This document shows positions 11,140 to 42,099 of a stretch of DNA of 64,000 nucleotides, in pieces. Position numbers and translations under genes: made by a program. The first letter of the stretch is position 1; every line of letters begins with the position of its first letter. Source of the DNA: Mizuhopecten yessoensis (Eukaryota); NCBI RefSeq assembly GCF_002113885.1, contig NW_018406874.1:334576-398575 (forward strand), in the 5' to 3' direction. A model generated the notes under the pieces. It did no database searches and had not been told where the DNA came from. It saw only the letters and a list, made by a program, of their open reading frames with translations.

Positions 11140-12280
11140 GCAGCATGCACGAGAAGAGACATAACGGTTTATACGATTCTGTCTGCCATCAAATAGCAGG
11201 ACAGCCTTTCTGTTATTTTATGTCTCGCTATACCCCATATATTGTATTGATATGTGTATATCTGGTTAAGCTTTTAGACTTGACAGTTTTCTGTTACCGA
11301 TGGTGGCGAAAACCGAGTTATCGGGGGCAATATGTCATAGCATCTTGTTATACGTACATTACAATGTTTTACACTCGCGTTAGATATAATCTAGGGCCAG
11401 AAGGCGGCCATTCCATTAGCGTTCTAGCTACATTATGTATTTCTTTGTGTAACAAACGTGTCTAGCGAGATTGTGTGGGTCAGAGAATGATTTTCAAGAA
11501 TATTGAAATTTCGAATGACAGTCCTACTTTTCTTATTATTTGTTAATGTTCCACAGAATGCTCAATTTGGATTATTTCGATATTGGTTTCTTTTAACCGA
11601 CTCGCTAAACAGAGGAGCTGGTTTGTGTCTGCAGTCCAATGACAGATGTCACAATCACAGCAAAATATTCGTCATACCTTCTTACGTCTATGGGCAATTC
11701 TATGAGTTGAAGAGATGATATCTGTGAGCAACAATAAGAATAGATGGATATTTGACATTTACTGCAATGTAACATATATACCACTCTGTGATGTTGCAAA
11801 TTTTTATCGGCCATGAAAATCAATGTCAACGCCTTGACGTCATCACATTATGGCGTAATTATTGGTACACTGGACACCAAAGGCCCTTCATTGAAAGTAA
11901 ATAGTTTTAAATGGTTTATAGAGTATTGAACTACCTACATTTGGCACAAAGGAAGGCAGATGGAAATACTTCAACATCAAGTACTACCTGTTTTCATTGG
12001 GAATTCTTTTCGTTTGGAATTCATATGTCTATATAAGCCAACTGAAAGCAATTCAATGATTACATTATATGTTGATTAGTATGATAATATGTAGTATTTG
12101 AAAGTTTGGCGATAGGTCGTTCCTAATAATAATTGAGGAAGCTATCCCTGCCAGTATCGAAATGTTGACTGTACATTCATTGGCTTGTGCAAACAGTCAA
12201 TTTACCACTACAGCAGAAACTGCACTCGAATGCTTAATTAATACGATTGCGACATTGTCATATGTCCATTGTCCAACTAT
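11140..12280 (-). pseudogene. Heavily decayed LicD-family pseudogene, closest to the 25643-26803 gene
   Basis: Minus-strand fragments occur in collinear order across several frames. DDVKALTLIFMADKNLQHHRVVYMLH (about 11844-11767) matches NELDAMFMTFHHFSNALKKANVTFMLY. LIVAHRYH..*..IDV (11738 onward) matches LIGAHRHH..W.DDIDV. CNVRITRCYD matches CNSPHVLSRTYD, and KTVKSKSL (11290-11267) matches KTVKCQSL. Stops and frameshifts occur throughout, and the boundaries are approximate. Confidence 0.55.
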
Positions 12281-12729
12281 GTTTTTGTTATATCCGTGAT
12301 CTGTTTCAAACTAACATGCAAACACGACCAATAATTCAAATATCTACGGCCCTGGATGGTTTTTGAACAGATATTTAATATTAAAAATATATAATCATAA
12401 AAAAATATGTTAAAAAACACCCACTGCATTCGTAGATTGACTTATTAAGGCTTACTGATGTAAACAGTTCTACACTGGTAATGTATTCCTCTTACGTTCT
12501 CATAATCATATGAACCGCCAAATTAACAAATAGTGAGATAAGTAGGAACGAGTTGTGTTGATAATTGTGCTAAGCTAGTTTGATAAATTTGTTAAATAGT
12601 CACTAATTTGTCACACACACAGTGGTTTCAATACACAGGAAATTTAACTAGATACGAAACACAACAAGACTGAATATGTACAAATAATTTTCCCCACCAA
12701 ACGTGATGAGAATATCAGTAACGCACTTG

Positions 12730-13438
12730 TCAGCAATGCTGAAAAGTAATGATATAATAGATGACGCTTCCTCGGTAAACCATGTTCTCGTTCCATCGTC
12801 CGTCTGTCAGCTGAACATGTTCCGCAAACCCGAACTTGTGTTCAAGCTTCGAACACAACTCTTCAGTATAACGATTTGATGGTGTTTCAGCTGTGTGAGA
12901 AAACCCTCGAGATTTACACCTTTCCAGATCAACTTGATATAATGCACGGTCTAGTTACATGGTACAGGAAGTGACAGGTGCGCGAACTTCCTTCGAACAG
13001 GTAATCGCCCGTTTTCGTTATGAATAAACATATGCGTTCTGTTATGACTTCAAAAAAATGTGGTTATAAACGGCCGTCGTAGAACCTGTTTGACCGTCTA
13101 ATTGACTATTACATCGATGTCGTCATCCAATGAAATAGGGCCGTGGTGTCGATAAGGCCAAAATGTACGTACGTAATATTTTTATCTGTTATCAATTTGT
13201 AGAAATTTTCCACCGTATTTGTCATTCGTTCGGTGTCACTTTTGCTAAGAGAAAATCGAAACACTCTTCTGACTATATGGCGTTTGCCATGGAACAATTG
13301 ATGTATGTATAGAACAACCAAGATGACAAAATATAAGAAGGCATCTGTAACGTTGCAGCGGATATCATATGTTGCCACAGTTGTAAGGGCTAAATGTATC
13401 TTACTCATTCCTAGCATAACTGGCATTTTTGAAGCCAA
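12730..13438 (-). pseudogene. LicD-family pseudogene, tandem duplicate of the 16758-17576 gene
   Basis: Minus strand gives a TM segment FLYFVILVVLYI, then ENFYKLITDKNITY, a frameshift that removes the GGTLLG motif, YRHHGPISLDDDIDVIVN*, PVRRKFAHLSLPVPCN* (identical to the intact copy) and CSKLEHKFGFAEHVQLTDGRWNENMVYRGSVIYYIITFQHC*. It has internal deletions and premature stops. Confidence 0.88.
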
Positions 13439-14035
13439 TGAGGTACCAATTGTACCAGCAACTGTAAATCACACAAACCTAAGTAGTATGAATGTGTAAC
13501 GTCCACAATAAATCTACGTTATAATTTGTTCACTTGTCCTCAAGAGCAAGCACGTTTTGCATCCGTTCTCACCAACTCTCCTTTGTGTGAATATAACGAA
13601 GGTGTTAAAAATATATCACTCTGATCTATTCTGACGAACACATGCATGTGTATCACACGTGTCTCTCTATTTCCTATTCTACGTAGAACAGTTTTGCGTT
13701 GACTCGTCTTACAAATGCGATTTCTGTGTGACTTGCCTTACAAACGCAGCTTTTGCAATCTTACAAACATAGCAACCTTTGCGTTGATTTGTCTCACAAA
13801 TACACACAGGCCTCGTGTTGACTTGTCTCACAAATACAGTTTTTGTGTTGACTCGTCAACACCAATGTTTATTTCTGTCTAATCATACTTGTTGTGGTGA
13901 CTTTTCCTTACGAGCTTTCCTTGTGGTTGTGACACTTTCTAAACGCCAAGAATACAATTTTCTGCTCGAATTTTTCCTATAAAACACGACTTCACGTCGA
14001 TAATAGACAAACGGTCTTCATTAATTTGAGTTGAT

Positions 14036-16757: not shown

Positions 16758-17576
16758 TCAGCAATAACGTGGAGTGATGACCGAGTACAGTACAACCCCC
16801 TGGTAGACCATGCTCTCGTTCCATCGTCCGTCCGTCGTCCGAACATGCTTCACAAACCCAAACCTTTGTTCAAGCTCCGAGCACGGAACACTAGCAAACT
16901 TTTGTAACGGTATATACTTTTCCGTCTTGTGGGAATATCTCGGCGATTCACAGATCGCCAAATCAACGGAACGTAATCCAATATCTAAGTTACAGGGCAC
17001 AGGTAGAGACAGGTGTGCAAATTTCCGTCGAACAGGTGGTAAAATTTTGTACGTTGGTGCCGTAAATTGGGGACGTCGCACGTGAATTTCGTGATACATG
17101 TGAGTTTCGTTGTTACTCCAGAAAAAGATGTCAACGTATGGCCAGCGAAACGGTTTATAAGGAAGATGTTTAGATTTTGCGTCATAAAATTTCCAGGCAT
17201 AGTTAACTGGTGTAAAAAATTCAAAGTCAGGTTTCATCTTGGGTAAAAGTTCAGCCAAGCGTCCTCTATCAGAGGCATTCACCATGACGTCGACATCGTC
17301 ATCCCAGGGAATAGGACCGTGGTGTCGATAAGACCCCAGCAGCGTACCGCCTTCCAATATGTACGTGATGTTATTCTCCGTCATTAATTTGTCGAACTTT
17401 TCAAGAGTTCTTAGTAATTTATCAAGGTCACTATCCGTGAGTTGAGGTTTGAACACATTGTTAGGGAAATGTCTGCCTCGAACCTTTAATCCAGACATAA
17501 ACAAATAGACGAGGCCACAAGTGAAGACCACCTCAAGGATGATTTTCCACAACCATGATTTAACCAGAAAAGACAT
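16758..17576 (-). CDS. LicD/fukutin-family nucleotidyltransferase-fold phosphotransferase, type II membrane protein, 272 aa, single coding exon
   Basis: The ORF track starts at TTG 17603, but the first in-frame ATG is at 17576. N-terminal hydrophobic anchor (WLWKIILEVVFTCGLVYLFM); LicD motifs YILEGGTLLGSYRHHGPIPWDDDVDV, WKF and WPYVDIF. Candidate 5'-UTR splice acceptor (tttcag) near 17855. Confidence 0.9.
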   Translation of the reverse strand: MSFLVKSWLWKIILEVVFTCGLVYLFMSGLKVRGRHFPNNVFKPQLTDSDLDKLLRTLEKFDKLMTENNITYILEGGTLLGSYRHHGPIPWDDDVDVMVNASDRGRLAELLPKMKPDFEFFTPVNYAWKFYDAKSKHLPYKPFRWPYVDIFFWSNNETHMYHEIHVRRPQFTAPTYKILPPVRRKFAHLSLPVPCNLDIGLRSVDLAICESPRYSHKTEKYIPLQKFASVPCSELEQRFGFVKHVRTTDGRWNESMVYQGVVLYSVITPRYC

Positions 17577-19426: not shown

Positions 19427-22400
19427 GTGGTTAATACACAGTTGGTGTGGTGTACTGGTACATTGGTAGTCTTACAGTTATGTGGTTTACACACGGTTGG
19501 TGTGGTGTACTGGTGGTACATTGGTGACCTTACAGCTATGTGGTTTACACACGATTGATGTGGTGTACTGGTACATTGGTAGCTTACAGCTATGTTGTTT
19601 ACACACGATTGGTGTGGTGTACTGGTACATTCGTGGACTTACAGCTATGTGGGTTACACACGATTGGTGTGGTGTACTGGTACATTTGTCGGCTTACAGC
19701 TATGTGGTTTACACACGATTGGTGTGGTGGACTGGTACATTGGTGGACTTACAGCTATGTGGTTTACACACGATTTGTGTGGTGTACTGGTACATTGGTA
19801 GACTTACAGCTATGTGGTTTACACACGATTGATGTGGTGTACTGGTACATTGGTGTTCTTACAGCTATGTGGTTTACACACGATTGGTTTGGTGTACTGG
19901 TACATTGGTGACCTTACAGTTACGTGGTTTACACACGATTGGTGTGGTGAACTGGTCCATTGGTGACCTTACAGCTATGTGGTTAACACACGATTGGTGA
20001 ACTGGTACATTGGTGACCTTACAGCTATGTGATTTACACACGGTTGGTGTGGTGTACTGGTACATTGGTAGTCTTACAGCTAAGTGGTTTACACACGGTT
20101 GGTGTGGTGTACTGGTGGTACATTGGTGACCTTACAGCTATGTGGTTAACACACGATTGGTGAACTGGTACATTGGTGACCTTACAGCTATGTGATTTAC
20201 ACACGGTTGGTGTGGTGTACTGGTACATTGGTAGTCTTACAGTTATGTGGTTAACACACGATTGGTGTGGTAGCTATGTGGTTTACACACGATTGATGTG
20301 GTGTACTGGTACATTGGTAGCTTACAGCTATGTTGTTTACACACGATTGGTGTGGTGTACTGGTATATTGGTAGCCTTACAGCTATGTGGTTAACACACG
20401 ATTGGTGAACTGGTACATTGGTGACCTTACAGCTATGTGGGTTACACACGATTGGTGTGGTGTACTGGTACATTCGTGGACTTACAGCTATGTGGTTTAC
20501 ACACGATTGATGTGGTGTACTGGTACATTGGTAGACTTACAGCTATGTGGTTTACACACGATTGATGTGGTGTACTGGTACATTGGTGTTCTTACAGCTA
20601 TGTGGTTTACACACGATTGGTTTGGTGTACTGGTACATTGGTCGGCTTACAGCTATGTGGTTAACACACGATTGGTGAACTGGTACATTGGTGACCTTAC
20701 AGCTATGTGGGTTACACACGATTGGTGTGGTGTACTGGTACATTGCTATGTGGTTTACACACGATTGGTGTAGTGTACTGGTACATTGGTGGACTTACAG
20801 CTATGTGGTTTACACACGATTTGTGTGGTGTACTGGTACATTGGTAGACTTACAGCTATGTGGTTTACACACGATTGATGTGGTGTACTGGTACATTGGT
20901 AGACTTACAGCTATGTGGTTTACACACGATTGATGTGGTGTACTGGTACATTGGTGGCCTTACAGCTATGTGGTTTACACACGATTGGCGTGGTGTACTG
21001 GTACATTGGTCGGCTTACAGCTATGTGGTTAACACACGATTGGTGAACTGGTACATTGGTGACCTTACAGCTATGTGATTTACACACGGTTGGTGTGGTG
21101 TACTGGTACATTGGTAGTCTTACAGCTAAGTGGTTTACACACGGTTGGTGTATGTGGTTTACACACGATTGGTGTGGTGTACTGGTACATTGGTGACCTT
21201 ACAGTTATGTGGTTTACACACGATTGGTGTGGTGAACTGGTACATTGGTGACCTTACAGCTATGTGGTTTACACACGATTGGTGTGGTGTACTGGTACAT
21301 TGGTCGGCTTACAGCTATGTGGTTTACACACGATTGGTGTGGTGTATTAGTACATTGGTCGCCTTATAGCTATGTGATTTACACACGATTAATGTGGTGT
21401 ACTGGTACATTGGGGACCTTACAGCTATGTGGTTTACACACGATTGGTGTGGTGTATTGGTACATTGGTGCCCTTACAGCTATGTGGTTAACACACGATT
21501 GGTGTGGTGTACTGGTATATTGATAGTCTTACAGTTATGTGGTTAACACACGATTGGTGTGGTGTACTGGTACATTGGTGACCTTACAGTTATGTGGTTT
21601 ACACACGATTGGTGTGGTGAACTGGTACATTGGTGACCTTACAGCTATGTGGTTTACACACGATTGGTGTGGTGTACTGGTACATTGGTAGTCTTACAGT
21701 TATGTGGTTAACACACGATTGGTGTGGTGTACTGGTATATTGATAGTCTTACAGTTATGTGGTTAACACACGATTGGTGTGGTGTATTGGTACATTGGTA
21801 GACTTACAGCTATGTGGTTTACACACGTTTGGTGTGGTGTATTGGGACATTGGTGACCTTCCAGCTATGTGGTTAACACACGATTGGTGTGGGGTACTGG
21901 TACATTGGTAGTCTTACAGTTATGTGATTTACACACGGTTGGTGTGGTGTACTGGTACATTGGTGCCCTTACAGCTATGTGGTTAACACACGATTGGCGT
22001 GGTGTACTGGTACATTGGTGACCTTACAGCTATGTGATTTACACACGGTTGGTGTGGTGTACTGGTACATTGGTAGTCTTACAGCTATGTGATTAACACA
22101 CGATTGGTGTGGTGTATTGGTACATTGGTGCCCTTACAGCTATGTGGTTAACACACGATTGGAGTGGTGTACTGGTACATTGGTGACCTTACAGCTATGT
22201 GATTTACACACGGTTGGTGTGGTGTACTGGTACATTGGTGGCCTTACAGCTATGTGGTTTACACACGATTGGTGGGGTGTACTGGTACATTGGTAGTCTT
22301 ACAGTTATGTGGTTTACACACGGTTGGTGGGGTGTACTGGTACATTGGTGACCTTACAGCTATGTGATTTGCACACTGTTGGTGTGGTGTACTGGTACAT

Positions 22401-23240
22401 TGGTGACCTTATAGCTATGTGGTTAACACACGATTGGTGTGGTATACTGGTACATTGGTGACCTTACAGCTATGTGATTTGCACACTGTTGGTGTGGTGT
22501 ACTGGTACATTGGTGACCTTACAGCTATGTGGTTTACACCCGATTGGTGTGGTGTACTGGTACATTGGTGACCTTACAGCTATGTGGTTTAAACACGATT
22601 GGTGTGGTGTATTGGTACATTGGTGACCTTACAGCTATGTGGTTAACACACGATTGGTGTGGTGTGCTGGTACATTGGTAGTCTTACAGTTATGTGGTTA
22701 ACATACGATTGGTGTGGTGTACTGGTACATTGGTGGCCTTACAGTTATGTGGTTTACACACGGTTGGTGTGGTGTACTGGTATATTGGTGGCCTTACAGC
22801 TATGTGATTTACACACGATTGATGTGGTGTACTGGTACATTGGTAGTCTTACAGTTATGTGGTTTACAGACGGTTGGTGTGGTGTACTGGTATATTGGTG
22901 GCCTTACAGCTATGTGATTTACACACGATTGGTGTGGTGTACTGGTACATTGGTGACCTTACAGCTATGTGATTTACACACGGTTGGTGTGGTGTACTGG
23001 TACATTGGTAGACTTACCGCTAAGTGGTTTACACACGGTTGGTGGGGTGTACTGGTACATTGGTGGACTTACAGCTATGTGGTTTACACACGATTGGTGT
23101 GGTGTACTGGTACATTGGTAGACTTACAGCTATTTGGTTTACACACGATTGGTGTGGTGTACTGGTATATTGGTAGTCTCACAGCTATGTGGTTTACACA
23201 CGATTGGTGTGGTGTACTGGTACATTGGTGGCTTTACAGT
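19427..23240. repeat. About 55-bp GT-rich minisatellite, roughly 69 copies (3.8 kb)
   Basis: Unit ggtttacacacgattggtgtggtgtactggtacattggt(gacc/agtc/agac/ggac/cggc/ggcc)ttacagctatgt. Period of 55 measured at 22531 and 22586; shortened variant units occur. Confidence 0.97.
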
Positions 23241-25170: not shown

Positions 25171-25642
25171 CGTGTGCAACACTGACTCCCAATGCAGGAT
25201 CTGTTTTCACTACGCGTAAATATGTAATGAATTCCCAGAACATAAATCAGAAATGACAGTTAATTTGAAAAATAAGTATCCTCAAAGCAAGTCTGGAATG
25301 ATTTTATTTACGTGTGTACATGTATCATACAAAGATAGACAGAATGGTATGAAGTCGTGCTTATCTGAGCATGGTCAGAAGTTGTGTTTATTAAGTTGAT
25401 ATATCGCTTTCACAATAGCATATCTGACATATACTTATAACAACAAATACTGTTTGTAGTGAGGGTACCGGTACGTCTTTAGATATATGTACGTAGATGT
25501 ATCATCCTTAGAAGCCCGGTCAATGCAAAACCAGCAGGTTATATATAATACAGTGTATTACAACACGCATTGTCACATCATATAACAAGGAGTCATTCTT
25601 TAAAAATATATATTTCTTTTCAGCCACATTACTTTCAGATTG

Positions 25643-26803: not shown

Positions 26804-28699
26804 CCTTATCTAGTCAACGGTGTACTTCACCACACACAGTGCAACATGCGATCTGACGCCTTGTGTCGTCCTCGTCATGCAGAATTACGCTTTAAATCAT
26901 TCATTGTTCATCTTGGTCAGGGACATTCTGAAAGGGAAAGTAAATAGATTGTATAAAACCATCGGGTTTACTTTCTGAGGATGTAAATAGTCTCTCCTCA
27001 TATAGGGTCATTGTAGTTACAACTTTACTATGTTTTCAATTATCCGGCATTGGGGTAATACATACAATAACACTTAAGGTCACACACAACTTTATATATG
27101 TATATTTGAAAACTGTAGAAAATGGATAAAAAGGGAGAAAATACGAGGAAGATTTATCATATACTTAAGATATGAATGAAAGGGATAATGACTGAATCCC
27201 CTCCAACGAGTGGGCATGGACTATGGAAAAGAGCTAGGCCCAGGGAGAACCACACTCGTTCAAACCTTCGTACCAATTTGAGTGGATAGTATAAGAAAAT
27301 GTCTAAATTATTCTTTGACATTATACCCCCAACAGCATCACTGTAATGTTTACCTCACAGAGAAAAACACATATATCATAACAATAAAGCGTTCATTGTT
27401 TAACATAATGATAAAATATACTTACGAAGATATAGTTAGTTCCAACGAGGCCATATGCTGCAGCATCCTCTATCCGTTCACTTAGGCTGATGGCCACACG
27501 TCTGTGCAGTGTGAACTACACGTGATAATGTCATCGTGATGATTGGCCTTTCTGTGTCCATTTTATAACGCGCACTCCCAGTATTGATCGCATGTGCCCA
27601 AATCCGCACACTGCACGGCACCAGACATCGCCAAGATTTATTGATTTTAGACCCCGTGCGCACGGAGGATGCGACCGTGGTACGACGTCTCAGCCTCACA
27701 AAGTCTACCGGTTTAAGGTTATTTATGGAGTGAAACAATGATTTGGTAACTTGATTGCTAGATTTCGATTACAGTTTTATATTTGCCGTTGTTAAGCCTT
27801 CACAAACGACTCGGTTGCTGAAATTAGTTTACAAGAAACCCCCCCTAATGATTTGTACTGTACTTTGCATGTCTACACGTACAAGTTTAGTAAAAATCAC
27901 TATTCACTGTGATTTTTGAGTGATTTTTTCGTTTTTCTAGGAGAAGCTTCAAATATTAATCATTCTATCGTACTTTTTGTTTTTAATTACTTTCCTTGCA
28001 ATTAGCGACCGTTATGTACATCCTAATTGATTTTAGGATATATATAACCCTATTCCTGTGTTGAACAGCTTTAAAATGGGTTAAGACCTGATCAAAATTG
28101 ATTCCAATGCAGATGGTATAGTTATGGGTTAATAGAAAGAGAAAAACGACAAGCGATAGTACCAACACAAAATTACAAAGGCCACGGTGAGTCCCACAGT
28201 TCAAACTGGAGACTAAACGGAAGTCCCTTGCACCGTCGACAAGAGGACCATTAATCACAGAGGTGGGCCTTTACCCATCCTCGGTCCCAGGGGGAAATCG
28301 CACTCTTGTTTACCCTCGGTCCAAGAGAAAAAGAAGCTAAGTGCGGTTGTTACCATGGAACCGAGGATGACCTTAAACATATAGGTGGAATTTATTCTGG
28401 CATGGTTCACGTGCAATTTAAGTTGACGAATAAACCAACAGTTGTAAACGTATTACGTTATAATGGGTTAAGAAGGGACTGTCTTACCTACTGTAGCACC
28501 TCTCCATGTTGATTTACATACTTCTACATTGTTTTTGAACACTTTAAACATCGACTTTTACGCTTTTGGCAGATTAGTCGTTAATTGACTAAATGACCTT
28601 ACGGTGCAGTAAAATGCTAATCTTGTTTGGTTTTCTGCAATCAACATACTAAACGTGGGTACATCCTAACTTTAAATTTCTAATAATTAGGTTCACAAG

Positions 28700-32423: not shown

Positions 32424-35400
32424 TCACACAATCGTGCCATATTTTTTAACAAATTGTTCGAGATCATTAGCAGGAATTGTTGTTGCTGCTTCATTTATCT
32501 GCAATAAAAGTCAACACATTTGTTTGAAATGATAAAAACATTTGTTTATATTTTTTACACCATACTTTTACATTGAACTTTAAATTTTCTGAATGTGCAT
32601 AATTAGTATATTTCAAAACAAAACTAATCCTTCAAAGATATTTTTGTTACAATGCACAGTTTATTGAGATTTTCAAAAATGTTCTATTCCTTATAATCAG
32701 TAGTTTAAGATTTAAGATTCATGATTATTCTCTTCTGAGGCATACAGCCCATCTATATTTTCTTTCTCTGAGAAATACAAATACTAAGCTGAGGTAATGG
32801 TATAACTTATGTCAATGAGACGAGCTTAAATATTTAATTTCACCATGAATACTTAAGGGACTGACCTGTCTCCACTTGTCAATACCGTTGTCCACTGTGC
32901 GTTTGGTGCCAAGGAGCTTTTTCTGTCGCAGAGCCACGTGGTCCCTGAGCAGGGTGTTCTGGTGCTCCAGCTGGGTGATGACATGCTGAAGCTGTGCCTT
33001 CTGTTTCTCTTTGATTGGGATATTGTGTACCTGACTGTCTTGCTGGGGGTCACCTGAAGGTCGCCTAACACAAACAGAAATATTTATATTTTGGAGGTCC
33101 GATTCTTATGCTTGCTTTAATATGATGTGTCCAATTTATTCACAGTATCAAATATCTTGACTTGTTTTTTTACAATTACAGGTATGTAAAAATATAGCTG
33201 ATGAGTTTTTCGTCAATCATAAATATTTATGTTAATGTTTCTATATACAATACCTTACACATGTACATACCAAATGCAACATGTCCATACATTTCAAAAA
33301 TATCCTCACCATGCCAGCTCTTTATTGTCTTTCTGACTGGCGATAATTCCATCCAGGTCATCTAGTATTTTCTCCATCTGTTCTTCAGCAAACATCAACA
33401 TTACTTCCTCCTTCAAACAAACAAAAACGTGTCCACTATAAAATAATACCTTACAATAACCAATCAGTGTTGTTCCAATTAGTCAATCTGATCGATGATT
33501 GGTCATTTTACCTTTTCTTTGATCGAACATGGCTTGACAATAACAAAAAAAAAATTAAGAGTTAAAAGATTTGGAGCAGACCTGAAAAACGATAAAAACA
33601 AACACCTTTACTCTTAAGTTTCACCATAAACTGCTTTCAAACACCATTTCTGCCTTTATTTAGGCACTTAAAATATGTCCACGTCATTTTACCCATTTTG
33701 GTGAATGCTTCTCTGTTTCTTTTTCTTTCATTCCTTTACTATGTTATAATGAGGGGCAAGATGATAGACATGCATTGTAATCCATTAAGTATCACATCAT
33801 TCTTAAAGTATTTAAAGTACCTTGTAGCAAGTGTCATGTCTATGTGATAAAAATGCTTGCACTGATGCTTTTGTTACGAAGAGTGATAGTACTCACTGTA
33901 ATGTTCACATTTATGTAATTGGTTCTTTGCTAATGTACTGCCTAATGCCTCTTAATCAGGGCATGCAGTAGACCCTTGAGAGTATGTTTTTGACTCCCCT
34001 TAATTTGATTTGACTTGTGGGTTTATAGCTATAGGGACATGTCTACCATAATTGGCTTGACAATAACAAAAAAAAACTTGCACCAAAACTTTAACCGAGA
34101 AATTATATTAAGTCCAAAACACGTAAAAATTGCGCGAAAAAATTTCAATCCCAAACATGACAAAAACTTTAACCCAGAAATTGCACGAGAAAAGTTAAGT
34201 CCCAAACATGTCAAAAATTTATAAAAATAGGAATTATTTTCCCAAATTAAATCCATATTGTCCTTCTTAGACCCCACATGAACATCCATGCCAAAAATTA
34301 GGACAATAACACATGATCTGACTGAACTGTAGACCACTGAAGAAGTTTGCTCTGAAACTTTAACCAGAGGGACGGACGCAGACGCTTTACCATAATACAC
34401 CCGTCGAAATTCCTTGTTCAGTTACCATTTGATTGATTAAATTTGTGATTTGAATATAATTGTTTTTAAATAATGTTGATGAACAACCTTTAAATGGATT
34501 ACAGTAATTTTGACTTAGTGTAAATTTAGATTTTAAAAATCATATCACATCTGAAAATCTGAACAAAAAATAATAAATCAAATTAAGTTCACTGGAAATG
34601 CACAAAAACATTAACTTTACTGTCAACATACAAAGGTATTTTAGCTGTACAATGTAATATTTTTTTTGCATTTTTCACACTAATCCGAATATTCATAATC
34701 ATGATTAGCAATAAAGGAATGAAGGGAATTTTGTATCTTCTGCTATCAGGATGTTTTAGCTGTTGAAGCTTGGTGTAGACATGTTCAACTTGCCAATAAG
34801 TCGTGCATACTTAAAGTATGGACCTGCATACTAAATATATTTGAAATTTATCCAATTTTGAATGGAAAGTTAAGTGTGACAGATGGACACATCAAAATAT
34901 ATATAGCATCTCCCACTTTTCTGAGATACAGTAAAACTGTATTCTGTAGGGTGCATGTTTCCTTCTGATATCAACAAACCACTAGTAACTAAATAAGTAT
35001 CACCTATGTGTGTCAATACAAGTCATGTACAGGTAGACAGAATTCTGATATCAACAAACCTGAATCATCACAACTGTTGTGTTTGTGGATTAGACAACTT
35101 ACACTAATGTGACAGTCTAGCTGCTTCGTAAGCTGTAAATGCATCTTTTTGAGGACTTCAGGATTCTTCTTGTGAATGGGACGAAGATGCTTTTGAAATA
35201 ACTGTAACCTGTAATAAAGTGAAAAAAAGTCATTATATTTTGTATCCGTAACAGCTAATGTGTTTATCCCAACACAACACATACAACATGTTCATATCCA
35301 AGTGTTTTTAAATCTTTGAAATCAAGTACTAAGGTATATACTAGTACATACAATAACATTATGTAGTGTTTTATGGCAATCTGCGATCACTTTAAAAAAT

Positions 35401-37413
35401 ATCCAAACAAGAAATTATGTTAAAATATTCTAGATCCATAGATGGTGCCACTTCACATTAAATCCAATATTTACTTTTTATTAAAAAGACTGTCAAATAT
35501 ATGTTTGATTTTTTGTGTTATTTCCTTTAATTAGCCCCTACCTGTACCACTCTAAAAAAAAGGAAATAAAACAAACATGAATCCCGACCAGGTCTGACCT
35601 TCCCCAATTTTTCAGTCATGTTACCTGAAACATAAATATTTTTTTTGGTCTGACCAATTTATGAATTAGTTGATTTGATTTTTGAATTGTATCAAAATAT
35701 TACATTTGCAGAGAAAATTTTGCAGTTTTCACAAGGCATGATCTTATTTTTATGGAGAATAACTGCGATAACAATGCAGGTTTGATTGCCAGTGGACCAG
35801 TGCAACTTTTCTGATGAATATCAGTTATAATAAGGGCTTTCATAGAGAATTTGAGCCTCGGCAATAGTACGGTTATCTGGGATTAAAAACACAACCTGTA
35901 CCTAGATGTAGGCCAGGAAACTCTTAAAATTTGACAATGAATGCAAAACATCGCTGATGAAACTGAGTCTTTATTGATAATGGTAACAGGAAAGAGAATA
36001 GTGTGCTTCAGTTCCACCGGTGACATAGAACCCTCAATCTCCAGATTCCTAGTCGAACGCTCTACCACTGAGCTAAAGGGAATTTCCCTCCAGCTCGAAG
36101 CTGGAAAGCGACCTTAATCATGTGTACAATTAAAACCTGCCACACTACGTATACTCCCCCCTTTTTAAATGTGTTCGCCCTCAAAACACCACAACCCAGG
36201 TTCCAACTCCCTGTCACCATAGGAAGGCCCACGGACACCGTTTGTAACAGGAAAGAGAATCCACCGGGGATCAAGCACTCAATCTCCAGGTTCCTAGTCG
36301 GACACTCTACCACTGAGCTAAAGGGAAATTCCCTCCAGCTCGAAGCTGGAAAGCGACCTTAATCCTATGTACAATTAAAATCTGCCACAATGTTATCAAT
36401 TTTATTTTATACACTAGTACTAGTACTGCAACTATGTATATCTTCTGTCTTATAAAATCGTGGAATTAGATCTAATTCTGTGATAAAATATGATATGTCC
36501 CTGCCTCTGTCGTGCTTTTGGACATGTATATTTCTTTATGGTGCTAAAATTCAGTGGCGGATCCAGGGGTTTTTTTTGGGCTTCAGGACTTTTATTTTCA
36601 AAATCATGTATTTTAACCATTTTCCTCACATGGAACACAGGGTCACGTTACAAATGTCTGAAATACACATATGCTATACTGATATGGGTCACAACACACA
36701 TAAACATACACGTATGTTTATGTGTGTTGTGACCCGTATCAGTATAGCATATTATGTGTATTTCAGACATTTGTAACGTGACCCTGTGCATGGAAACTCC
36801 CCTGGAAATTAAGAAACACACCAGATAGGTCTCTGGATCCGCCACACATAACTCTTGTGTCGTGTGTTCGTATACATTTTTTTTATTTATTTGTTACAAT
36901 TGCAAGCCCTTGTGGATGGAAGCGTATAGGTAACAACAGAACGGCGTATGGACAGGGGTTCGAATTCGTTACACATGTCTGAAACACAGGGGCATGGATC
37001 GCTTTACTTTTAATATTAAAAAAAAGGGCTCCTATACTAATAAATATTTATTAGTATAGGAGACCCTTTTTTTAATAATTACAAGTAAATCGATCCATAC
37101 CCTTGTGGTCTGAAATACACATACATTGTATGCTATACTAATATCGGTCACATCATACATAAACATACTTATCTACGTGTGCTGTGACCCATATCAGTAT
37201 AGCACATGTGTATTTCGGACATTTGTCTGTTTGTAACGAACCCTGAGGTGTATGGGAGCAGATTTGAATGAAAACTTTCGAATACTTTGCAGATGAAATA
37301 ATCTTTTTCCTGGCCTGTGTCAACGCATTATTAAGAATCTGCATTCGTCCTAGTGACTCTGGCTTCTGTGATTCGTCTTTCGTTGTATCCATAGACTCGC
37401 TTTCATCTGCCAT
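32424..37413 (-). CDS. PMF1: Polyamine-modulated factor 1 / Nnf1 (MIS12 kinetochore complex subunit), 5 exons, 202 aa
   Basis: Exons 37413-37286, 35208-35103, 33410-33310, 33064-32866 and 32498-32424 (609 nt, phases consistent). The protein MADESE...RMQILNNAL...LTKQLDCHISEEV...LDDLDGII...ELAWRPSGDP followed by a coiled coil matches the PMF1/Nnf1 AWRPSG.P signature and its usual length. Confidence 0.85.
34010..34410 (-). mobile_element. Degenerate Helentron/HINE-like non-autonomous element
   Basis: Short internal repeats (cccaaacatg..aaaaa), a ggac microsatellite near 34370 and a cataata...cccgtc end, all typical of this class. A partial second copy (ggcttgacaataacaaaaaa) lies at about 33531. 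Confidence 0.45.
35983..36389 (-). mobile_element. Miniature LTR retroelement (TRIM) with a tRNA-like sequence inside each LTR
   Basis: Direct repeats at 35983-36144 and 36243-36389 ((t)gtaac...ccaca). Minus-strand PPT aaaaaggggggag at about 36154-36166 next to one LTR, and PBS-like cggtgtccgtggg next to the other. Each LTR carries TAGCTCAGTGGTAGAG (A box / D arm) and a degenerate T arm. aatg flanks both ends. Confidence 0.8.
36552..36845. mobile_element. Non-autonomous DNA transposon with CAGTGGCGGATCCAG termini, containing a nested MITE
   Basis: gtggcggatccag at 36554 and its reverse complement ctggatccgccac ending at 36845. Confidence 0.65.
36636..36788. mobile_element. 153-bp foldback MITE (CACAGGG termini) with 7-bp TSD catggaa
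   Basis: Almost perfect palindrome; catggaa at 36629-36635 and 36789-36795. Confidence 0.85.
36952..37245. mobile_element. Older second copy of the 36636 foldback MITE family, split by another insertion
   Basis: Shares gttaca.atgtctgaaa, tacacat, atgctatact, ggtcaca, tgtgaccc.tatcagtatagca and gtaacg.accctg with the 36636 element. Confidence 0.7.
36985..37107. mobile_element. 123-bp foldback MITE with 8-bp TSD gtctgaaa (P/hAT-type)
   Basis: cacagggg...cccttgtg palindrome centred on ataaatatttat; gtctgaaa at 36977-36984 and 37108-37115. Confidence 0.85.
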
Positions 37414-37472: not shown

Positions 37473-40203
37473 GGCGGTAGGTAAATCTTGTACGCCGCTC
37501 CCGCTCCCGTCCCAAAACCCCGTACCAGGCATATAGAGATATTTTAATATCTCATTAACGCGATCGTTTATATTTTTTATAAAATTATACAATAATTTCA
37601 AACATTATTTTCTAAATGTGACTATTAATAAAATGTAAATTTATCATCTAATAATTTAGAAATTGACGATAATGTTTATTTCAAGGGGGTAAAACTTGTA
37701 CGCCGCAGTCAACCGTGAAAATCACGGTTTTTCATATATAATTAGATATTCAGTGAAAATTAACATGTTGTTTTCAGATATATAGAACAAAATACCTTAC
37801 TGTTTATAATTATGTAAGTTTCGTTGAAATAAACGACATATTTCACATGAAATTCTGACTTTGTTGTGATCGCGGGGTGTTTTGTTTACTCCCGTACCCG
37901 TCCTAAGGGGACATCACTATGTCAATCTATGTCGTTATCAAGTAGAACTCTTCGCCATTCTATTAGAATGTTTCCAGGCTCTGCGACGAGGACGCAGTTC
38001 TACATAAGAGCCCATTTTTTGTTAAACTATATAAATATATATATATAAGATTAATAATAGTTCACAAAATAAGAATTCATGATTGGTTATCATTAGAAAA
38101 GAATGGTTATTTTTATAAAAAATGAAACGTTTTATAAAAAATGATTTTATGATTGAAATAATTGTGTTCTTTTTCAAAAGGAATTTTAAGTTTACTCACT
38201 ACACATTTTAACTTTTAATAGGATACATCTACAAATACATTAAAAAATACCAAAAATACTNNNNNNNNNNNNNNNNNNNNNNNNNNNNNNNNNNNNNNNN
38301 NNNNNNNNNNNNNNNNNNNNNNNNNNNNNNNNNNNNNNNNNNNNNNNNNNNNNNNNNNNNNNNNNNNNNNNNNNNNNNNNNNNNNNNNNNNNNNNNNNNN
38401 NNNNNNNNNNNNNNNNNNNNNNNNNNNNNNNNNNNNNNNNNNNNNNNNNNNNNNNNNNNNNNNNNNNNNNNNNNNNNNNNNNNNNNNNNNNNNNNNNNNN
38501 NNNNNNNNNNNNNNNNNNNNNNNNNNNNNNNNNNNNNNNNNNNNNNNNNNNNNNNNNNNNNNNNNNNNNNNNNNNNNNNNNNNNNNNNNNNNNNNNNNNN
38601 NNNNNNNNNNNNNNNNNNNNNNNNNNNNNNNNNNNNNNNNNNNNNNNNNNNNNNNNNNNNNNNNNNNNNNNNNNNNNNNNNNNNNNNNNNNNNNNNNNNN
38701 NNNNNNNNNNNNNNNNNNNNNNNNNNNNNNNNNNNNNNNNNNNNNNNNNNNNNNNNNNNNNNNNNNNNNNNNNNNNNNNNNNNNNNNNNNNNNNNNNNNN
38801 NNNNNNNNNNNNNNNNNNNNNNNNNNNNNNNNNNNNNNNNNNNNNNNNNNNNNNNNNNNNNNNNNNNNNNNNNNNNNNNNNNNNNNNNNNNNNNNNNNNN
38901 NNNNNNNTGTACTGACACTACCCAATGGTCCTCACCTGTATGATGAATTTGTGCTGATGCAGCGCTAGTTGGTTTCATTCTGAGTGCATAGTCCCACTTA
39001 TTGTTTTTCAAAATTGGAGCATAACCTGTATCTTGCATTCCGCCTATATTAGGAAACTGTTTCTTTAAATTATTTTGTACGTAACACATGATATTACCAC
39101 ATAGTTTGTTATCAATTAATAAATCATTTTTATCCTTAAAACTTAGCGTACTTTTACCGTTATCCATCCAGATACGTCTTGTTTCTGCGGGCTTAATAAG
39201 CGACGGTCTGTCATCCGAAAGATCCAATAAAATATCACTTACATTAGGTTTGTTCTTTTTTGGTAATGAAAGTCTTCTTCTTTGTTTTGCCTTAGGACTG
39301 GTACTTACAACTGGTTCAGATAAACTTACACCATCACTACATTGTATGTCTGCTACTGACTCAGCTATAATACTTACATCTTTTGTATCTTCTTTTCCTT
39401 CTATTATGTTTGACAATCTCTTACGGGTTAATGAAAGTCTAGACCTAGGTTTTGGTTTTCTTGGAGTACCAATATCAGAAATATCGTGGAGAGGAACTGA
39501 CTCTAATTTCACTGGAGAAGCCAATGTAGCCCTTGGAGTTGAACAAGTTATATTTGAACTTGAAATATAACATTGTTATATGGCCAAATTATAATTAATC
39601 ATGCTTAACACTCATAGACTTGCAGCTGTATCAACAATGGATTAAAGAATTATAATGGTGTATCATTTTCTACATCTTATAAGCTTGTGGCGTTTGATGT
39701 GTTGTGATAAGGGATTAATCTCTTATTCATTACATGTAAAAAAAAAATGCAGATTATTAAATGAAAAAGAAATAATGAAATAGTTGTATTAAAAGGTTTT
39801 TTTTNATCACAACAAAGTCAGAATTTCATGTGAAATATGTCGTTTATTTCAACGAAACTTACATAATTATAAACAGTAAGGTATTTTGTTCTATATATCT
39901 GAAAACAACATGTTAATTTTCACTGAATATCTAATTATATATGAAAAACCGTGATTTTCACGGTTGACTGCGGCGTACAAGTTTTACCCCCTTGAAATAA
40001 ACATTATCGTCAATTTCTAAATTATTAGATGATAAATTTACACTTTATTAATAGTCACATTTAGAAAATAATGTTTGAAATTATTGTATAATTTTATAAA
40101 AAATATAAACAATCGCGTTAATGAGATATTAAAATATCTCTATATGCCTGGTACGGGGTTTTGGGACGGGAGCGGGAGCGGCGTACAAGATTTACCTACC
40201 ACC
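37473..40203. mobile_element. Mutator/MULE-superfamily DNA transposon (Rehavkus/Ulp1-carrying type), TIRs of about 398 bp, 9-bp TSD
   Basis: Left TIR 37473-37870 and right TIR 39806-40203 (GG[C/T]GGTAGGTAAATCTTG...), with three mismatches seen. TSD acttatctt at 37464-37472 and 40204-40212. The interior has an N gap and a Ulp1-like ORF. Confidence 0.9.
38907..39560 (-). CDS. Transposon-borne Ulp1/SENP-like (C48) cysteine protease fragment, truncated by the assembly gap
   Basis: A basic low-complexity linker, then DKNDLLIDNKLCGNIM...QNNLKKQFPNIGGMQDT...QIHHTGEDHWVVSV, the His-Trp motif of Ulp1-like domains found in transposons. The rest lies in the Ns. Confidence 0.65.
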
Positions 40204-40476
40204 ACTTATCTTAGCCTTTGTAGAGTTTGTCGTCTATGTTTCCCATTAAGCAATTATGTGACCATGACGTATCATTTCTAATTTTAAACGAAAGTATTGC
40301 TTTATAAATTATATTTGGATTGGATTAAAATTATCTTATTAACGTTAATATTTGAATTTTTGCAAATAAATATATAAAAGAGAGCAAAACGATTATCCTT
40401 TGAGTAAAATATTTTATTTATTTAGAGAGGGTCATGTCGTTTTAGTTATGCCATTCTGAATTTTTTATTAACCAAG

Positions 40477-42099
40477 ATGTCAGCTTCCAGCTACTTTGAT
40501 TCTCAACAGAGCGAAAACAAAAGAAGTGGTTTCAACTCTTATAGGGAATTCAGTTTCTTCACACGCAAACGATTATTGAAAATTGGTAGCTTGCAATATA
40601 TGAAATGTCTCATGGCTATACTTGTGATCAATTTATTGGTGTTTTTATACCTGATGCATGCGTACAACCTCTTCTCCATCGACCAATACCTGTTATCAGC
40701 TGATGGTGGTCTTCACTTTCACCGTAAGGATGCCCAACATTTTGCTTTAGCAAAGGAAATAACTGTTGTCATAAGAGAATTTGAAGATTTCGAAAATCGT
40801 GTGAATGAAACTGTCAGAAATTTTAAATGGATATCTCCATACATGAATGTGATTGTAGTTTCCGATGACATTCCCTACCCACCGCTTAAACTAAACTTCA
40901 GTCAGACTGTACACTTTGTAAATCTGCAGTTGCATCCAATGCTAACAAACCCAATGGATGTCCTTAAAGGATTAATCAAAACCCCATATACAATTTTTGT
41001 TCCTGATGGCATCAATATAACGAAATCCAAAGCATTACTTCAAGCTGTAAGAAATATAAAAACTAGACAGTTGATTAAAGCTCTGGCCATCCCAGTTGGA
41101 AATGAAAAACTCAATTGTCCAGGAATGGATGTGCACCTACGGTCATGGTCTGTTGATTTCACTAATTTTGTTGGTGGTGAAGGAATGTGCGACTATGTGC
41201 AAGGTAACCATGCACTGCTGATGTTGACAAGTGACTTATTTGAGTTGACAAGTCCATTTGAACGTCCCCTGTATGTTTCATTGTACTTGCAGTTAACACT
41301 AAGAAGGTGGAAAACAGGAATATACACTGGTGATGTTTTCGTGCCGAAAACCATATTCAAAGACTTTCGAAGTGAATGGAAACATAAACATTTGGAAGAA
41401 TTACGACTGGAAAATACAATGAGAAAATTTGAAATAAAAAAGGTATCATATGATAAACAAAAAGTTTCCTATTATGGGTGTACAAAAGATACTGAGCGAT
41501 GTTTTGGAACTGTCATCAACGACATGCCTGATTTCTTACATAAAGGGAAATGGACTCCACCTTGTTGTTTAAAAGCGATAAGAGAAACAGCAAGACATGT
41601 TTTTACCATGTTGAATAAATGCTCAGCTCGCTACTGGCTTGAAGGGGGCAGCTTATTGGGAGCTGCAAGACACAAGGATATCATCCCATGGGACTATGAT
41701 ATTGACATTGGTGTTTATAAAGAAGATCTCGACAAATGTGAACAGTTCGTAACATTGGCAAAGAGGAATAGTTTTACGGATGAAGCAGGATTTCATTGGG
41801 AAAAGGCAACTGAAGGAGAATTTTTTAGGGTACATTACAGTGTTGTCAATCGTAACCATATAGATATCTTCCCATTTTTCCCAAAGTCTGGAATAATGAC
41901 AAAAAACACATGGTTTAAAACACACAGACAGGATACAGAGTTTCCTGAACATTATCTAAAACCGATGATAAAGGTGGAATTCATAGGAATCAACGTTTCA
42001 GCACCTAATAATGTCAGACAATTTTTAGAATATAAATTTGGAAAAGGAGTGATAGAAAACCCAAGGTTTCCCAACTCTGATTTGGTAGTTGGTGGATAG
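40477..42099 (+). CDS. FKRP: Fukutin-related protein (ribitol-5-phosphate transferase), 540 aa, single coding exon
   Basis: TM anchor, stem (TVVIREFEDFEN, PYPPL), zinc-finger Cys cluster YGCTKDTERCFGTV...GKWTPPCCLKAIRETAR, catalytic YWLEGGSLLGAARHKDIIPWDYDIDIG, and C-terminal FLEYKFGKGVIENP. All of these are FKRP-specific. Confidence 0.96.
   Translation: MSASSYFDSQQSENKRSGFNSYREFSFFTRKRLLKIGSLQYMKCLMAILVINLLVFLYLMHAYNLFSIDQYLLSADGGLHFHRKDAQHFALAKEITVVIREFEDFENRVNETVRNFKWISPYMNVIVVSDDIPYPPLKLNFSQTVHFVNLQLHPMLTNPMDVLKGLIKTPYTIFVPDGINITKSKALLQAVRNIKTRQLIKALAIPVGNEKLNCPGMDVHLRSWSVDFTNFVGGEGMCDYVQGNHALLMLTSDLFELTSPFERPLYVSLYLQLTLRRWKTGIYTGDVFVPKTIFKDFRSEWKHKHLEELRLENTMRKFEIKKVSYDKQKVSYYGCTKDTERCFGTVINDMPDFLHKGKWTPPCCLKAIRETARHVFTMLNKCSARYWLEGGSLLGAARHKDIIPWDYDIDIGVYKEDLDKCEQFVTLAKRNSFTDEAGFHWEKATEGEFFRVHYSVVNRNHIDIFPFFPKSGIMTKNTWFKTHRQDTEFPEHYLKPMIKVEFIGINVSAPNNVRQFLEYKFGKGVIENPRFPNSDLVVGG

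Follow-up and report, generated by a model that had tools for sequence, protein, structure and literature searches.

By sequence comparison, the LicD-domain genes of Mizuhopecten yessoensis described here belong to an old, stable gene neighbourhood and not to a fast-turnover cluster. Its two short members, genes A and B, are conserved, B is expressed and A probably is too, and they probably act as phospho-alcohol transferases with an acceptor other than that of FKRP. The window, which refers to the whole stretch of 64,000 nucleotides that was analysed, contains four real LicD-domain loci, namely FKRP, gene A, gene B and one A-type pseudogene. The order of the genes is GALM - [dead A-type copy] - A - B - PMF1 <-> FKRP - ALDH, with A and B both on the minus strand and FKRP on the plus strand. 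The features considered are as follows:

12733..13468, minus strand: A-type LicD pseudogene (tblastn and HMM pieces)
16758..17576, minus strand: gene A CDS, short LicD protein, 272 aa, ATG at 17576
19427..23239, no strand: 55-bp minisatellite, ~69 copies (Tandem Repeats Finder)
25359..26927, minus strand: gene B main exon (3' UTR, CDS and part of the 5' UTR), from transcript contigs
25643..26803, minus strand: gene B CDS, short LicD protein, 386 aa
26928..27425, minus strand: gene B 5' UTR intron, 498 nt, GT..AG
27426..27624, minus strand: gene B non-coding 5' exon, from transcript contigs
32436..37413, minus strand: PMF1 (Nnf1-domain kinetochore gene), 5 exons found by tblastn
38261..38907, no strand: assembly gap, an N run between PMF1 exon 1 and the FKRP ATG
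40477..42099, plus strand: FKRP orthologue, one coding exon, 540 aa

Gene content of the window

A preliminary description of this DNA had reported a true FKRP, two intact co-oriented LicD genes of 272 and 386 aa and two pseudogenes, five LicD loci in all. Pfam matches and coordinates agree with the three intact genes and one pseudogene was recovered, but the fifth locus, that is, the second pseudogene, was not found. Searching all six frames with the family HMM and with filters off gave no further match around 11140 or in the rest of the window, neither tblastn (E up to 200) nor blastn detected further LicD-like copies there, and positions 11100-11520, when read directly, contain nothing LicD-like. 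The assembly gap is intergenic between PMF1 and FKRP and is crossed by no LicD frame; a 431-aa ORF listed across it is an artefact of N being read as X. PMF1 lies between gene B and FKRP and is head-to-head with the latter. Its exons (37413-37282, 35210-35088, 33416-33309, 33063-32860 and 32501-32436) were located by a tblastn search that used the PMF1 portion of P. maximus P0124. Much of the spacer between A and B is occupied by the 55-bp minisatellite. At 20-24 kb, the GC skew is +0.23 to +0.31.

The 540-aa gene is, on sequence grounds, a true FKRP orthologue, with the stem, the C4 zinc-finger loop, the Rbo loop and similarity over its full length. Pfam assigns it both FKRP_N (1.2e-60) and LicD (8.8e-18), and it matches human FKRP (6KAJ) with E 1.4e-119 over residues 94-536, which cover stem and catalytic domain. 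The zinc-finger cysteines are retained, and C335/C342/C363/C364, D406/D410 and H483/Q485 are invariant in 39 orthologues. The protein is 87% identical to the FKRP-like protein of P. maximus; M42 is a possible alternative start, yielding 499 aa as annotated in Pecten.

The short LicD proteins

Genes A and B score, like FKRP, above the Pfam LicD (PF04991) gathering score of 22.6 bits, with 64.1 bits for A (2.6e-17), 48.0 for B (2.3e-12) and 65.7 for FKRP, and they match the family HMM at 1.3e-87 and 1.3e-94, respectively. The open frame of gene A spans 16758-17603(-). A hydrophobicity scan found one N-terminal hydrophobic segment in each protein, followed by the LicD domain, in agreement with the earlier assignment of both to LicD-family type II membrane proteins. 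In A, this segment (TM ~8-30) is separated from the catalytic domain by ~20 residues, with no Cys between segment and motif. In B, the segment (TM ~44-67) follows a ~45-aa N-terminal tail and ~100 residues separate it from the catalytic domain, with a single Cys (C81) between segment and motif. From the scan, type II topology is predicted for both proteins, and the tail of B would be cytoplasmic and the LicD domains of both lumenal.

In protein A, the LicD domain is followed by a C-terminal beta subdomain. The AF2 model (pLDDT 94.4, pTM 0.85) predicts a nucleotidyltransferase (Pol-beta-like) fold; its best PDB match in a Foldseek search is the catalytic domain of human FKRP (E 3e-8, ~175 columns), and the next matches are the small nucleotidyltransferases LnuA and ANT(2''). 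When the short LicD family was compared with the FKRP family by hhalign (prob 98.9, E 2.4e-17), A 50-219 was paired with FKRP 364-536. This alignment identifies D149 of A as the Asp equivalent to human D416, such that D92/D94/D96/D149 of A correspond to D406/D408/D410/D463 of scallop FKRP and to D360/D362/D364/D416 of human FKRP, all four of which are essential in the human enzyme (PMC6965139). The aligned region begins past the CC of the FKRP zinc finger and stops at residue 219 of A, leaving ~53 extra C-terminal residues; C209, H216 and C232 of A are invariant in its relatives.

A and B contain the described motif G.L.G..RHH...IPWDDD.D as well as the C/H/C pattern in their C-terminal part, each of which is (nearly) invariant in 226 relatives. 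W-D-D-D-x-D is invariant in 226/226, P..D..F is also conserved, and W91-D92-D93-D94-x-D96 together with D149 is invariant or nearly so in sets of 89 and 226 relatives. The short genes had also been said to lack the FKRP stem and zinc-finger Cys cluster, and this holds: neither protein has a Pfam match to FKRP_N at E<=0.01 or to FKTN_N (PF19737), no Cys cluster lies upstream of the catalytic motif, and hhalign found no counterpart in A or B of the HRQ ribitol-interacting loop of FKRP.

A and B are the scallop members of an already catalogued, uncharacterised LicD family, the 'LicD/FKTN/FKRP nucleotidyltransferase domain-containing proteins' known from molluscs, annelids, nemerteans and flatworms. 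These proteins are of the same length class, have the same invariant residues and one coding exon (six loci read), and are 30-46% identical to A and B. The named matches are all from Spiralia, while Atlas look-alikes include Cnidaria and Nematoda. Automatic labels of the family read RP688/RP689/RT0683-like or 'lipopolysaccharide cholinephosphotransferase licD'.

Expression of genes A and B

Gene B yields a spliced transcript. Transcript contigs from X1 (1767 nt) and X3 (1659 nt), two runs that belong to different studies, match 25359/25468-26927 and resume at 27426, leaving the intron and the flanks uncovered. Both contain the joint 26927->27426, and the intron ends are CT..AC on the plus strand. 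The description of the short genes as single-exon is therefore correct for the coding sequences of A and B, but not for the B mRNA, in which the non-coding 5' exon 27426-27624 is spliced to 26927. A stop at 26810-26812 in the frame of the B CDS rules out an N-terminal extension.

The splice junction of B also shows runs X1 and X3 to be transcriptomes. The sequence words of gene A are present at a fraction of 1.00 in X1 and of 0.96 in X3, and this sharing, in runs with the spliced transcript of B, suggests that A is expressed as well. Absence of expression had been named as evidence against the proposal; B has a spliced transcript, and the same transcriptome assemblies contain A. In the two genuine RNA-seq runs for which raw reads exist, and which may or may not contain the organism, no read fell on B among the ~19% sampled per run, so that B expression may be low or tissue-restricted.

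Conservation, synteny and gene turnover

The short genes had been suggested to be surface-glycan transferases in rapid birth-and-death turnover, under host-microbe or self-recognition selection. We consider this very improbable and largely refuted by the comparisons with other species. In all scallop genomes that were compared, the orthology of genes A and B is 1:1, across Mizuhopecten, Pecten and Argopecten for both genes and in Ylistrum for A only. The orthologues are 77-91% identical: for A, the values are 77-82% in Pecten, Argopecten and Ylistrum, and for B they are 79% over the full length in Argopecten and 91% over the C-terminal half in Pecten. Scallop A and scallop B each form a clade with 100% SH-aLRT support. 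At dS of 0.7-1.6, pairwise dN/dS is 0.07-0.12 for A and 0.06-0.09 for B, as low as for FKRP (0.08), which gives, at the pairwise level, no sign of relaxed or positive selection and lends host-microbe conflict no support. One-to-one orthologues of a characterised enzyme had been named as evidence against the whole proposal. The 1:1 orthology was found, and the turnover part accordingly fails, but the enzyme is uncharacterised, so the functional idea survives.

The gene order has likewise been kept. GALM-A-B-PMF1-FKRP-ALDH is also found in Pecten maximus, and the order and orientation of the genes, with A and B in one copy each, are identical in Pecten and Argopecten. In the annelid Owenia, a B-like LicD gene (27285220-27286068, minus strand) occupies the corresponding place, in the same orientation, next to PMF1 (27297192-27305717, minus strand) and FKRP (27306068-27307627, plus strand); its identity is 41% with B and 33% with A. 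The linkage to FKRP, whose absence from relatives would have spoken against a cluster, is thus seen in Pecten, Argopecten and Owenia. A head-to-head arrangement of FKRP and the Nnf1 gene is present in Pecten, Owenia, Gigantopelta and Haliotis. The short LicD genes tested in Gigantopelta and Haliotis asinina, which belong to another subclade, are not closely linked to FKRP (17 Mb and 48 Mb away, respectively), and the region beyond PMF1 in these genomes lay outside the comparison.

Some observations do fit turnover. Nothing equivalent to the A-type pseudogene occurs in the 10 kb beyond A in Pecten, Argopecten or Ylistrum, a second broken copy, of B type, lies outside the window on contig C1616, and gastropods, nemerteans and annelids each have several paralogues. 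The two broken copies are, however, the only signs of gene death, and no copy of A or B was gained or lost among Mizuhopecten, Pecten and Argopecten, the pseudogene of Mizuhopecten being the sole difference. This pseudogene was recognised by tblastn from segments in frames -1, -3 and -2, with a summed E of 4e-38; it is spread over three reading frames with two in-frame stops and ~47 codons missing, and its IPWDDD has become ISLDDD (W->L). At the DNA level, its identity with gene A is 70-72% for Mizuhopecten and Pecten alike, which indicates that it is old. A tandem duplication that predates the divergence of the scallop genera may have given rise to A and B, with B retaining the ancestral place beside PMF1-FKRP, as in Owenia. 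With regard to a sister relationship, the free tree splits A and B with weak support, and a joint clade is not rejected by the AU test (p 0.65).

Comparison with known transferases and proposed function

FKRP, a ribitol-5-phosphate transferase (human structures 6KAJ-6KAN), has in common with A and B the nucleotidyltransferase-fold core, the motif GG(S/T)LLG..RH..IPWD.D.D, the fourth catalytic Asp on a (V/I)D(I/L)F strand, the type II membrane layout, the single coding exon and the genomic neighbourhood. Unlike FKRP, A and B are devoid of the FKRP_N stem, the C4 zinc-finger loop and the HRQ loop; identity is ~22% over ~175 aligned residues only, and the ~53-residue C-terminal beta subdomain with its invariant C, H and C is additional. 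The zinc-finger loop of FKRP carries an acceptor-binding Arg, and this loop with R295, the Rbo loop and the stem are conserved only in FKRP orthologues (PMC6965139). Fukutin (FKTN), a Golgi transferase, resembles A and B in its LicD domain, its type II layout and its lack of the zinc-finger loop (PMC6965139), but has an FKTN_N stem domain that A and B lack. The bacterial phosphocholine transferases LicD (Haemophilus/Streptococcus) and Mf1 of Mycoplasma fermentans (NF045866, a diacylglycerol cholinephosphotransferase model) share with A and B the Pfam LicD domain, the conserved N-terminal Asp-run region (PMC11982090) and a catalytic unit of ~240-270 aa. A and B differ in their eukaryotic signal-anchor, in the Cys/His-containing C-terminal subdomain and in the hG[GS] motif, which is absent from Mf1 relatives (PMC11982090), and against the Mf1 equivalog model they reach 48 bits, over the N-terminal 50-100 residues with the motif only, with a cut-off of 225.

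As the four catalytic Asp are kept and the stem, zinc-finger loop and ribitol loop of FKRP are absent, the proposed role in phosphodiester transfer to glycans, distinct from that of FKRP, is a reasonable reading of the sequences. The N-terminal helix would anchor A and B in the Golgi or ER membrane, the Golgi being the presumed location, and the lumenal nucleotidyltransferase-fold core would be the catalytic unit. On the model of FKRP and Mf1, D92, D94, D96 and D149 would hold metal ions and thereby help to cleave an alcohol phosphate activated by CDP (or CMP), and the phospho-alcohol would pass to a glycan or glycolipid hydroxyl, with release of CMP. With CDP-choline or CDP-ethanolamine as donor, and with Mg/Mn, which it requires, Mf1 transfers phosphocholine (PC) or phosphoethanolamine (PE) (PMC11982090). 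Candidate groups for A and B are PC, PE, aminoethylphosphonate (AEP) and glycerol phosphate. Since the FKRP-specific parts are missing and A and B have a C-H-C subdomain of their own, their acceptor is most likely unlike that of FKRP, and the donor alcohol perhaps is as well.

We also considered that A and B might serve the FKRP pathway itself, adding ribitol or glycerol phosphate to O-mannosyl glycans of dystroglycan-like proteins, with the linkage reflecting shared regulation or function. The ancient physical linkage in scallops and an annelid and the common catalytic core and fold are in line with this, as is the succession of two LicD enzymes, FKTN and FKRP, in one pathway (PMC4873967, PMC6965139). 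We nonetheless regard it as unlikely. The elements by which FKRP recognises ribitol and RboP-core M3 have no counterpart in A and B, and the fukutin step already has candidates, as Fukutin-type N-domains (PF19737) are encoded elsewhere in the scallop genome, on contig C2674. PMF1 intervenes between B and FKRP, which precludes a shared promoter, and the linkage may be a mere relic of tandem origin.

A nucleotidyltransferase-fold function on other substrates, such as nucleotidylylation of proteins or small molecules, or a non-catalytic binding role, appears less likely still. It draws on the structural matches after FKRP being small-molecule adenylyltransferases and on the subfamily being uncharacterised. 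By sequence, however, the proteins belong to LicD and not to the ANT families, the invariance of the four FKRP-essential Asp in 226 relatives argues against lost catalysis, and FKRP, FKTN and Mf1 all use CDP donors for phospho-alcohol transfer (PMC6965139, PMC11982090).

For the family as a whole, the case for A and B as phospho-alcohol transferases bears on a known gap, as, according to reviews, the eukaryotic enzymes behind the addition of PC, PE or AEP to glycans await identification (PMC6994554, PMC11982090). The scallop genome encodes PEP mutase, the committed enzyme of AEP synthesis, which makes an AEP donor pathway plausible. The conserved neighbourhood suggests that a short LicD gene has stood beside PMF1-FKRP since before the annelid-mollusc split. 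Tentatively, the C-H-C short LicD subfamily could represent the missing animal transferases of zwitterionic phosphodiesters and phosphonates, namely PC, PE and (methyl)aminoethylphosphonate, onto N-/O-glycans or glycolipids, with A and B as two specificities.

LicD loci in the window

Four independent searches of the window were made for LicD loci: tblastn with the three intact proteins, tblastn with E up to 200 and a word size of 2, an HMM built from 226 family members and run with filters off on every stop-to-stop piece in six frames, and blastn with the DNA of genes A and B and of the pseudogene. The same four loci were recovered by all of them:

12733-13468, minus strand: A-type LicD pseudogene
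16758-17603, minus strand: gene A, a short LicD gene, 272 aa from the ATG at 17576
25643-26803, minus strand: gene B, a short LicD gene, 386 aa
40477-42099, plus strand: FKRP, the ribitol-5-phosphate transferase gene

The ATG of gene A at 17576 is the start also found in its Pecten, Argopecten and Ylistrum orthologues, and the proteins encoded in the window give 100% matches to Mizuhopecten yessoensis records and 77-91% matches to other scallops. The preliminary description had counted five LicD loci, two of them pseudogenes. Four loci and one pseudogene stand, and both counts were thus one too high, since nothing LicD-like was found at 11140-11520 by tblastn, HMM or blastn, and the three minus-strand frames, when read directly over 11100-11520, are stop-rich and carry no motif. 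The candidate fifth locus near 11140 amounts to chance-level scraps (E 17-33) at inconsistent protein positions and was rejected. Two other scraps, at 17686-17788(-) (E 0.48) and 55923-56256(+) (E 0.17), have no HMM support and were taken as chance matches. There is an assembly gap at 38261-38907, between exon 1 (37282-37413) of PMF1, the Nnf1-domain kinetochore gene that lies between B and FKRP, and the FKRP start codon. No LicD reading frame extends to this gap, and a long ORF that crosses it is an artefact of N being read as X.

The pseudogene aligns to A across three frames (-1, -3 and -2) and contains two in-frame stops, a W->L change in IPWDDD and a loss of about 47 central codons, while the stretches YRHHGPI and PVRRKFAHLSLPVPCN are still identical to A. 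At the DNA level, it shows 70-72% identity to gene A in Mizuhopecten and in Pecten alike and is, judging from these identities, an old A-type duplicate and not a recent one. In Pecten, Argopecten and Ylistrum, the 10 kb past A contain no counterpart of it.

By domain content and alignment, the gene at 40477-42099 is a true FKRP orthologue, as had been claimed. Besides LicD, it carries the FKRP_N stem domain (1.2e-60), its residues 94-536 align to human FKRP (6KAJ) with E 1.4e-119, and it is 87% identical to Pecten maximus FKRP. The zinc-finger cysteines (C335, C342, C363 and C364), the catalytic Asp and the HRQ of the ribitol loop, whose roles are known from human FKRP work (PMC6965139), are all retained and are invariant in 39 orthologues.

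Family membership and predicted fold of A and B

Both short genes belong to Pfam LicD, with matches that exceed the Pfam threshold. Each has an intron-free coding sequence, one N-terminal hydrophobic segment (residues ~8-30 in A and ~44-67 in B) and several N-glycosylation sequons. Neither carries the stem, the zinc finger or the Rbo loop of FKRP, neither has the FKTN_N domain of fukutin, and the score against the Mf1-type equivalog is 48 bits vs a cut-off of 225. A and B are members of a short LicD subfamily that is already catalogued and automatically annotated, under names such as 'LicD/FKTN/FKRP nucleotidyltransferase domain-containing', 'RP688/RP689-like' and 'licD'. Its named matches are from Spiralia without exception; look-alikes proposed by a language model include cnidarian and nematode LicD clusters, which should be considered a lead only. 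In the tree, 98% support separates the short family both from FKRP and from another, 'long' LicD subfamily that the same genome encodes.

Across 226 aligned relatives, the invariant or nearly invariant columns are G.L.G..RHH...IPWDDD.D, K, P..D..F, FP and P, followed in the C-terminal part by C, H, C, L, FV, E and a final C. The catalytic motif and Cys pattern that had been noticed in A and B are, given this conservation, correct and are hallmarks of the whole short subfamily, the Cys of 'PVPC' being less conserved.

A confident AlphaFold2 model of A was obtained from 89 sequences (pLDDT 94.4, pTM 0.85). Its best match among solved structures is the catalytic domain of human FKRP (E 3e-8, ~175 columns, 21-24% identity), followed by small nucleotidyltransferases. 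Profile-profile alignment of the short family with the FKRP family (prob 98.9, E 2.4e-17) pairs A 50-219 with scallop FKRP 364-536. Residues D92, D94, D96 and D149 of A align with D360, D362, D364 and D416 of human FKRP, each of which is essential for activity (PMC6965139). The two families differ, however, around this core: the alignment begins directly past the zinc-finger CC of FKRP, the ribitol-interacting loop of FKRP has no counterpart in the short family, and FKRP lacks the ~53-residue beta C-terminal part of A (past residue 219), in which C209, H216 and C232 are invariant, together with a terminal C272. Based on these alignments, A and B are predicted to have the FKRP chemistry in common with FKRP, but not its substrate-recognition parts.

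Conservation of the gene neighbourhood

In Pecten maximus, the gene order is FKRP(-), PMF1(+), B(+), A(+) and aldose epimerase, which is the mirror image of the window. Exons that match the flanking Pecten genes are found on both sides:

5610-9166: aldose-epimerase exons
about 47980-48530: aldehyde-dehydrogenase exons, beyond FKRP

In Argopecten, the order and orientation of PMF1-B-A are unchanged. The divergent, head-to-head PMF1(Nnf1)/FKRP pair is found in scallops, in the annelid Owenia and in the gastropods Gigantopelta and Haliotis asinina. Owenia has a short LicD gene 11 kb past PMF1 and on the PMF1 strand, in the position and orientation of B, and this gene is 41% identical to B vs 33% to A. 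The short LicD genes that could be placed in Gigantopelta and Haliotis asinina belong to a different subclade and lie 17 and 48 Mb from FKRP, respectively, on the same chromosome. As linkage is seen in Pecten and Owenia, the association with FKRP on which the description of a cluster depended does hold outside Mizuhopecten and probably represents the ancestral state. That scallop and annelid share the LicD-PMF1-FKRP arrangement is a small new observation, and it points to a very old association between the short family and FKRP.

The far side of FKRP is occupied by a WD40-repeat gene in Owenia, Gigantopelta and Haliotis asinina and by aldehyde dehydrogenase in scallops. The PMF1-FKRP spacer (37414-40476) is ~3 kb long, including the 647-N gap, and measures ~0.3-0.5 kb in Pecten maximus, depending on the FKRP start used; it contains, on the minus strand, a 205-aa ORF fragment (38908-39524) that matches no Pfam family. 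The A-B spacer is largely filled by a 55-bp minisatellite (19427-23239, ~69 copies, 80-89% matches), which has strong GC and AT skew and gives rise to long spurious plus-strand ORFs. A second array, with a 43-bp unit, is found at 24409-24949.

Orthology and selection

Orthologues of A are 82% identical in Pecten maximus, 79% in Argopecten irradians and 77% in Ylistrum balloti. For B, identity is 79% over the full length in Argopecten and 91% over the C-terminal half in Pecten. The N-terminal half of Pecten maximus B (LR736846.1) is concealed by a 100-N gap (L015:15184-15283, in our numbering of loci), and the model LOC117333919 wrongly joins PMF1 exons to what is left of the LicD gene, so that the predicted protein is an Nnf1+LicD chimaera. 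An additional transcript-like contig from another run matches B at 70% identity. Pairwise Nei-Gojobori dN/dS values are 0.07-0.12 for A, 0.06-0.09 for B and 0.08 for FKRP, with dS of 0.7-1.6. The rapid turnover, or arms race, proposed for these paralogues is contradicted by the orthology, the dN/dS values and the synteny taken together, and A and B are conserved, housekeeping-like putative enzymes rather than fast-evolving ones.

In trees, the scallop A clade and the scallop B clade each have 100% support, and their stems are long (0.8-1.5 changes/site vs 0.1-0.25 within scallops). Free trees split A from B with weak support, and an A/B split that predates molluscs was provisionally considered. 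This reading was withdrawn, as a joint A+B clade is not rejected by the AU test (34 rows, LG+G4; p 0.65).

Expression

Transcript contigs of B from two public runs belonging to two studies (1767 nt in X1 and 1659 nt in X3) cover 25359-26927 and then 27426-27624. They jump a 498-nt intron with GT..AG ends on the minus strand, and the intron and its flanks are uncovered by transcript contigs (18/30 bins empty). B is thus expressed as a spliced mRNA whose 5' exon is non-coding, and a stop at 26810-26812 shows that there is no N-terminal extension of the protein. The splice junction also indicates that the X1 and X3 assemblies are RNA-derived. Sequence words of gene A are present in X1 and X3 at 1.00 and 0.96, which points indirectly to expression of A. 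No reads on B were found in the ~19% sampled from each of the raw RNA-seq runs X21 and X24, a result that is uninformative by itself, and an exact-sequence look-up of B among transcript contigs gave no record.

LicD and related genes elsewhere in the genome

Genome-wide searches covered an assembly of 988 Mb in 82,659 contigs, in which the window is C3547:334576-398575. The small contig C80978 (3,081 bp), a candidate paralogue of A, was rejected as such: over 2.2 kb it matches 15732-17941 at 98.0% identity, with 3 gaps, and by this identity is an allelic haplotig of the A region. The public record for gene A, LOC110444437, sits on this contig, and counts of LicD genes in the genome include one redundant allele. 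A dispersed B-type copy on contig C1616 (227891-231034; 61-62% aa identity to B) is probably a pseudogene; it has at least 2 frameshifts and runs through three or more frames, and its N-terminal part is missing. The long LicD subfamily comprises seven loci (contigs C2356, C2776 twice, C4782, C736, C239 and C5553). Each is one long ORF of 542-756 aa in which LicD is the sole Pfam domain, its motif falling near residues 370-550, and three of the copies hardly differ within the domain. Two FKTN_N matches on contig C2674 (114381-117575 and 134634-137825), 20 kb apart, may represent two fukutin-like genes or two exon copies.

A multi-exon PEP-mutase gene is found on contig C5031 (113326-122644), one exon of which is ~92% identical to the Mytilus edulis enzyme (PDB 1M1B/1PYM). 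Given this gene, M. yessoensis is presumably able to synthesize phosphonates, namely aminoethylphosphonate. A six-frame genome search gave no match to IspD, the CDP-ribitol synthase; this blank carries little weight, as the gene is multi-exon and the assembly fragmented.

Functional implications

Glycan epitopes carrying phosphocholine (PC), phosphoethanolamine (PE) or aminoethylphosphonate (AEP) are important for recognition by pentraxins and other proteins of innate immunity. The best-supported reading of our results is that A and B are LicD-family type II membrane transferases, conserved as a tandem pair, and that they have long been neighbours of FKRP. Given the predicted fold and the invariant set of catalytic Asp, we infer that they would catalyze metal-dependent transfer of a phospho-alcohol from a CDP- or CMP-activated donor, with release of CMP. 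[quoted passage not shown] According to reviews from 2019 and 2025, the enzymes that place PC, PE or AEP on invertebrate glycans are unknown (PMC6994554, PMC11982090), and the bacterial LicD-family protein Mf1 is the sole enzyme of this sort characterized in vitro (PMC11982090). The marine snail Volvarina rubella (termed a 'bivalve' in PMC8699351) has PC and methyl-AEP on its N-glycans. The earlier idea that A and B could be invertebrate glycan-phosphodiester transferases is thus still a reasonable hypothesis, if a tentative one.

The advance is modest, as the family was already catalogued and the function of A and B is putative. Part of its value lies in the LicD-PMF1-FKRP arrangement common to annelid and mollusc, and part in a corrected evolutionary picture, of conserved rather than fast-evolving enzymes. 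As A and B evolve slowly, their orthologues in tractable spiralians should have the same function. The two genes are intact, under purifying selection and expressed (in the case of A, probably so), with intron-free coding sequences, a confident model for A and clearly missing FKRP-specific elements, and they thus represent two well-defined candidates for an open biochemical question.
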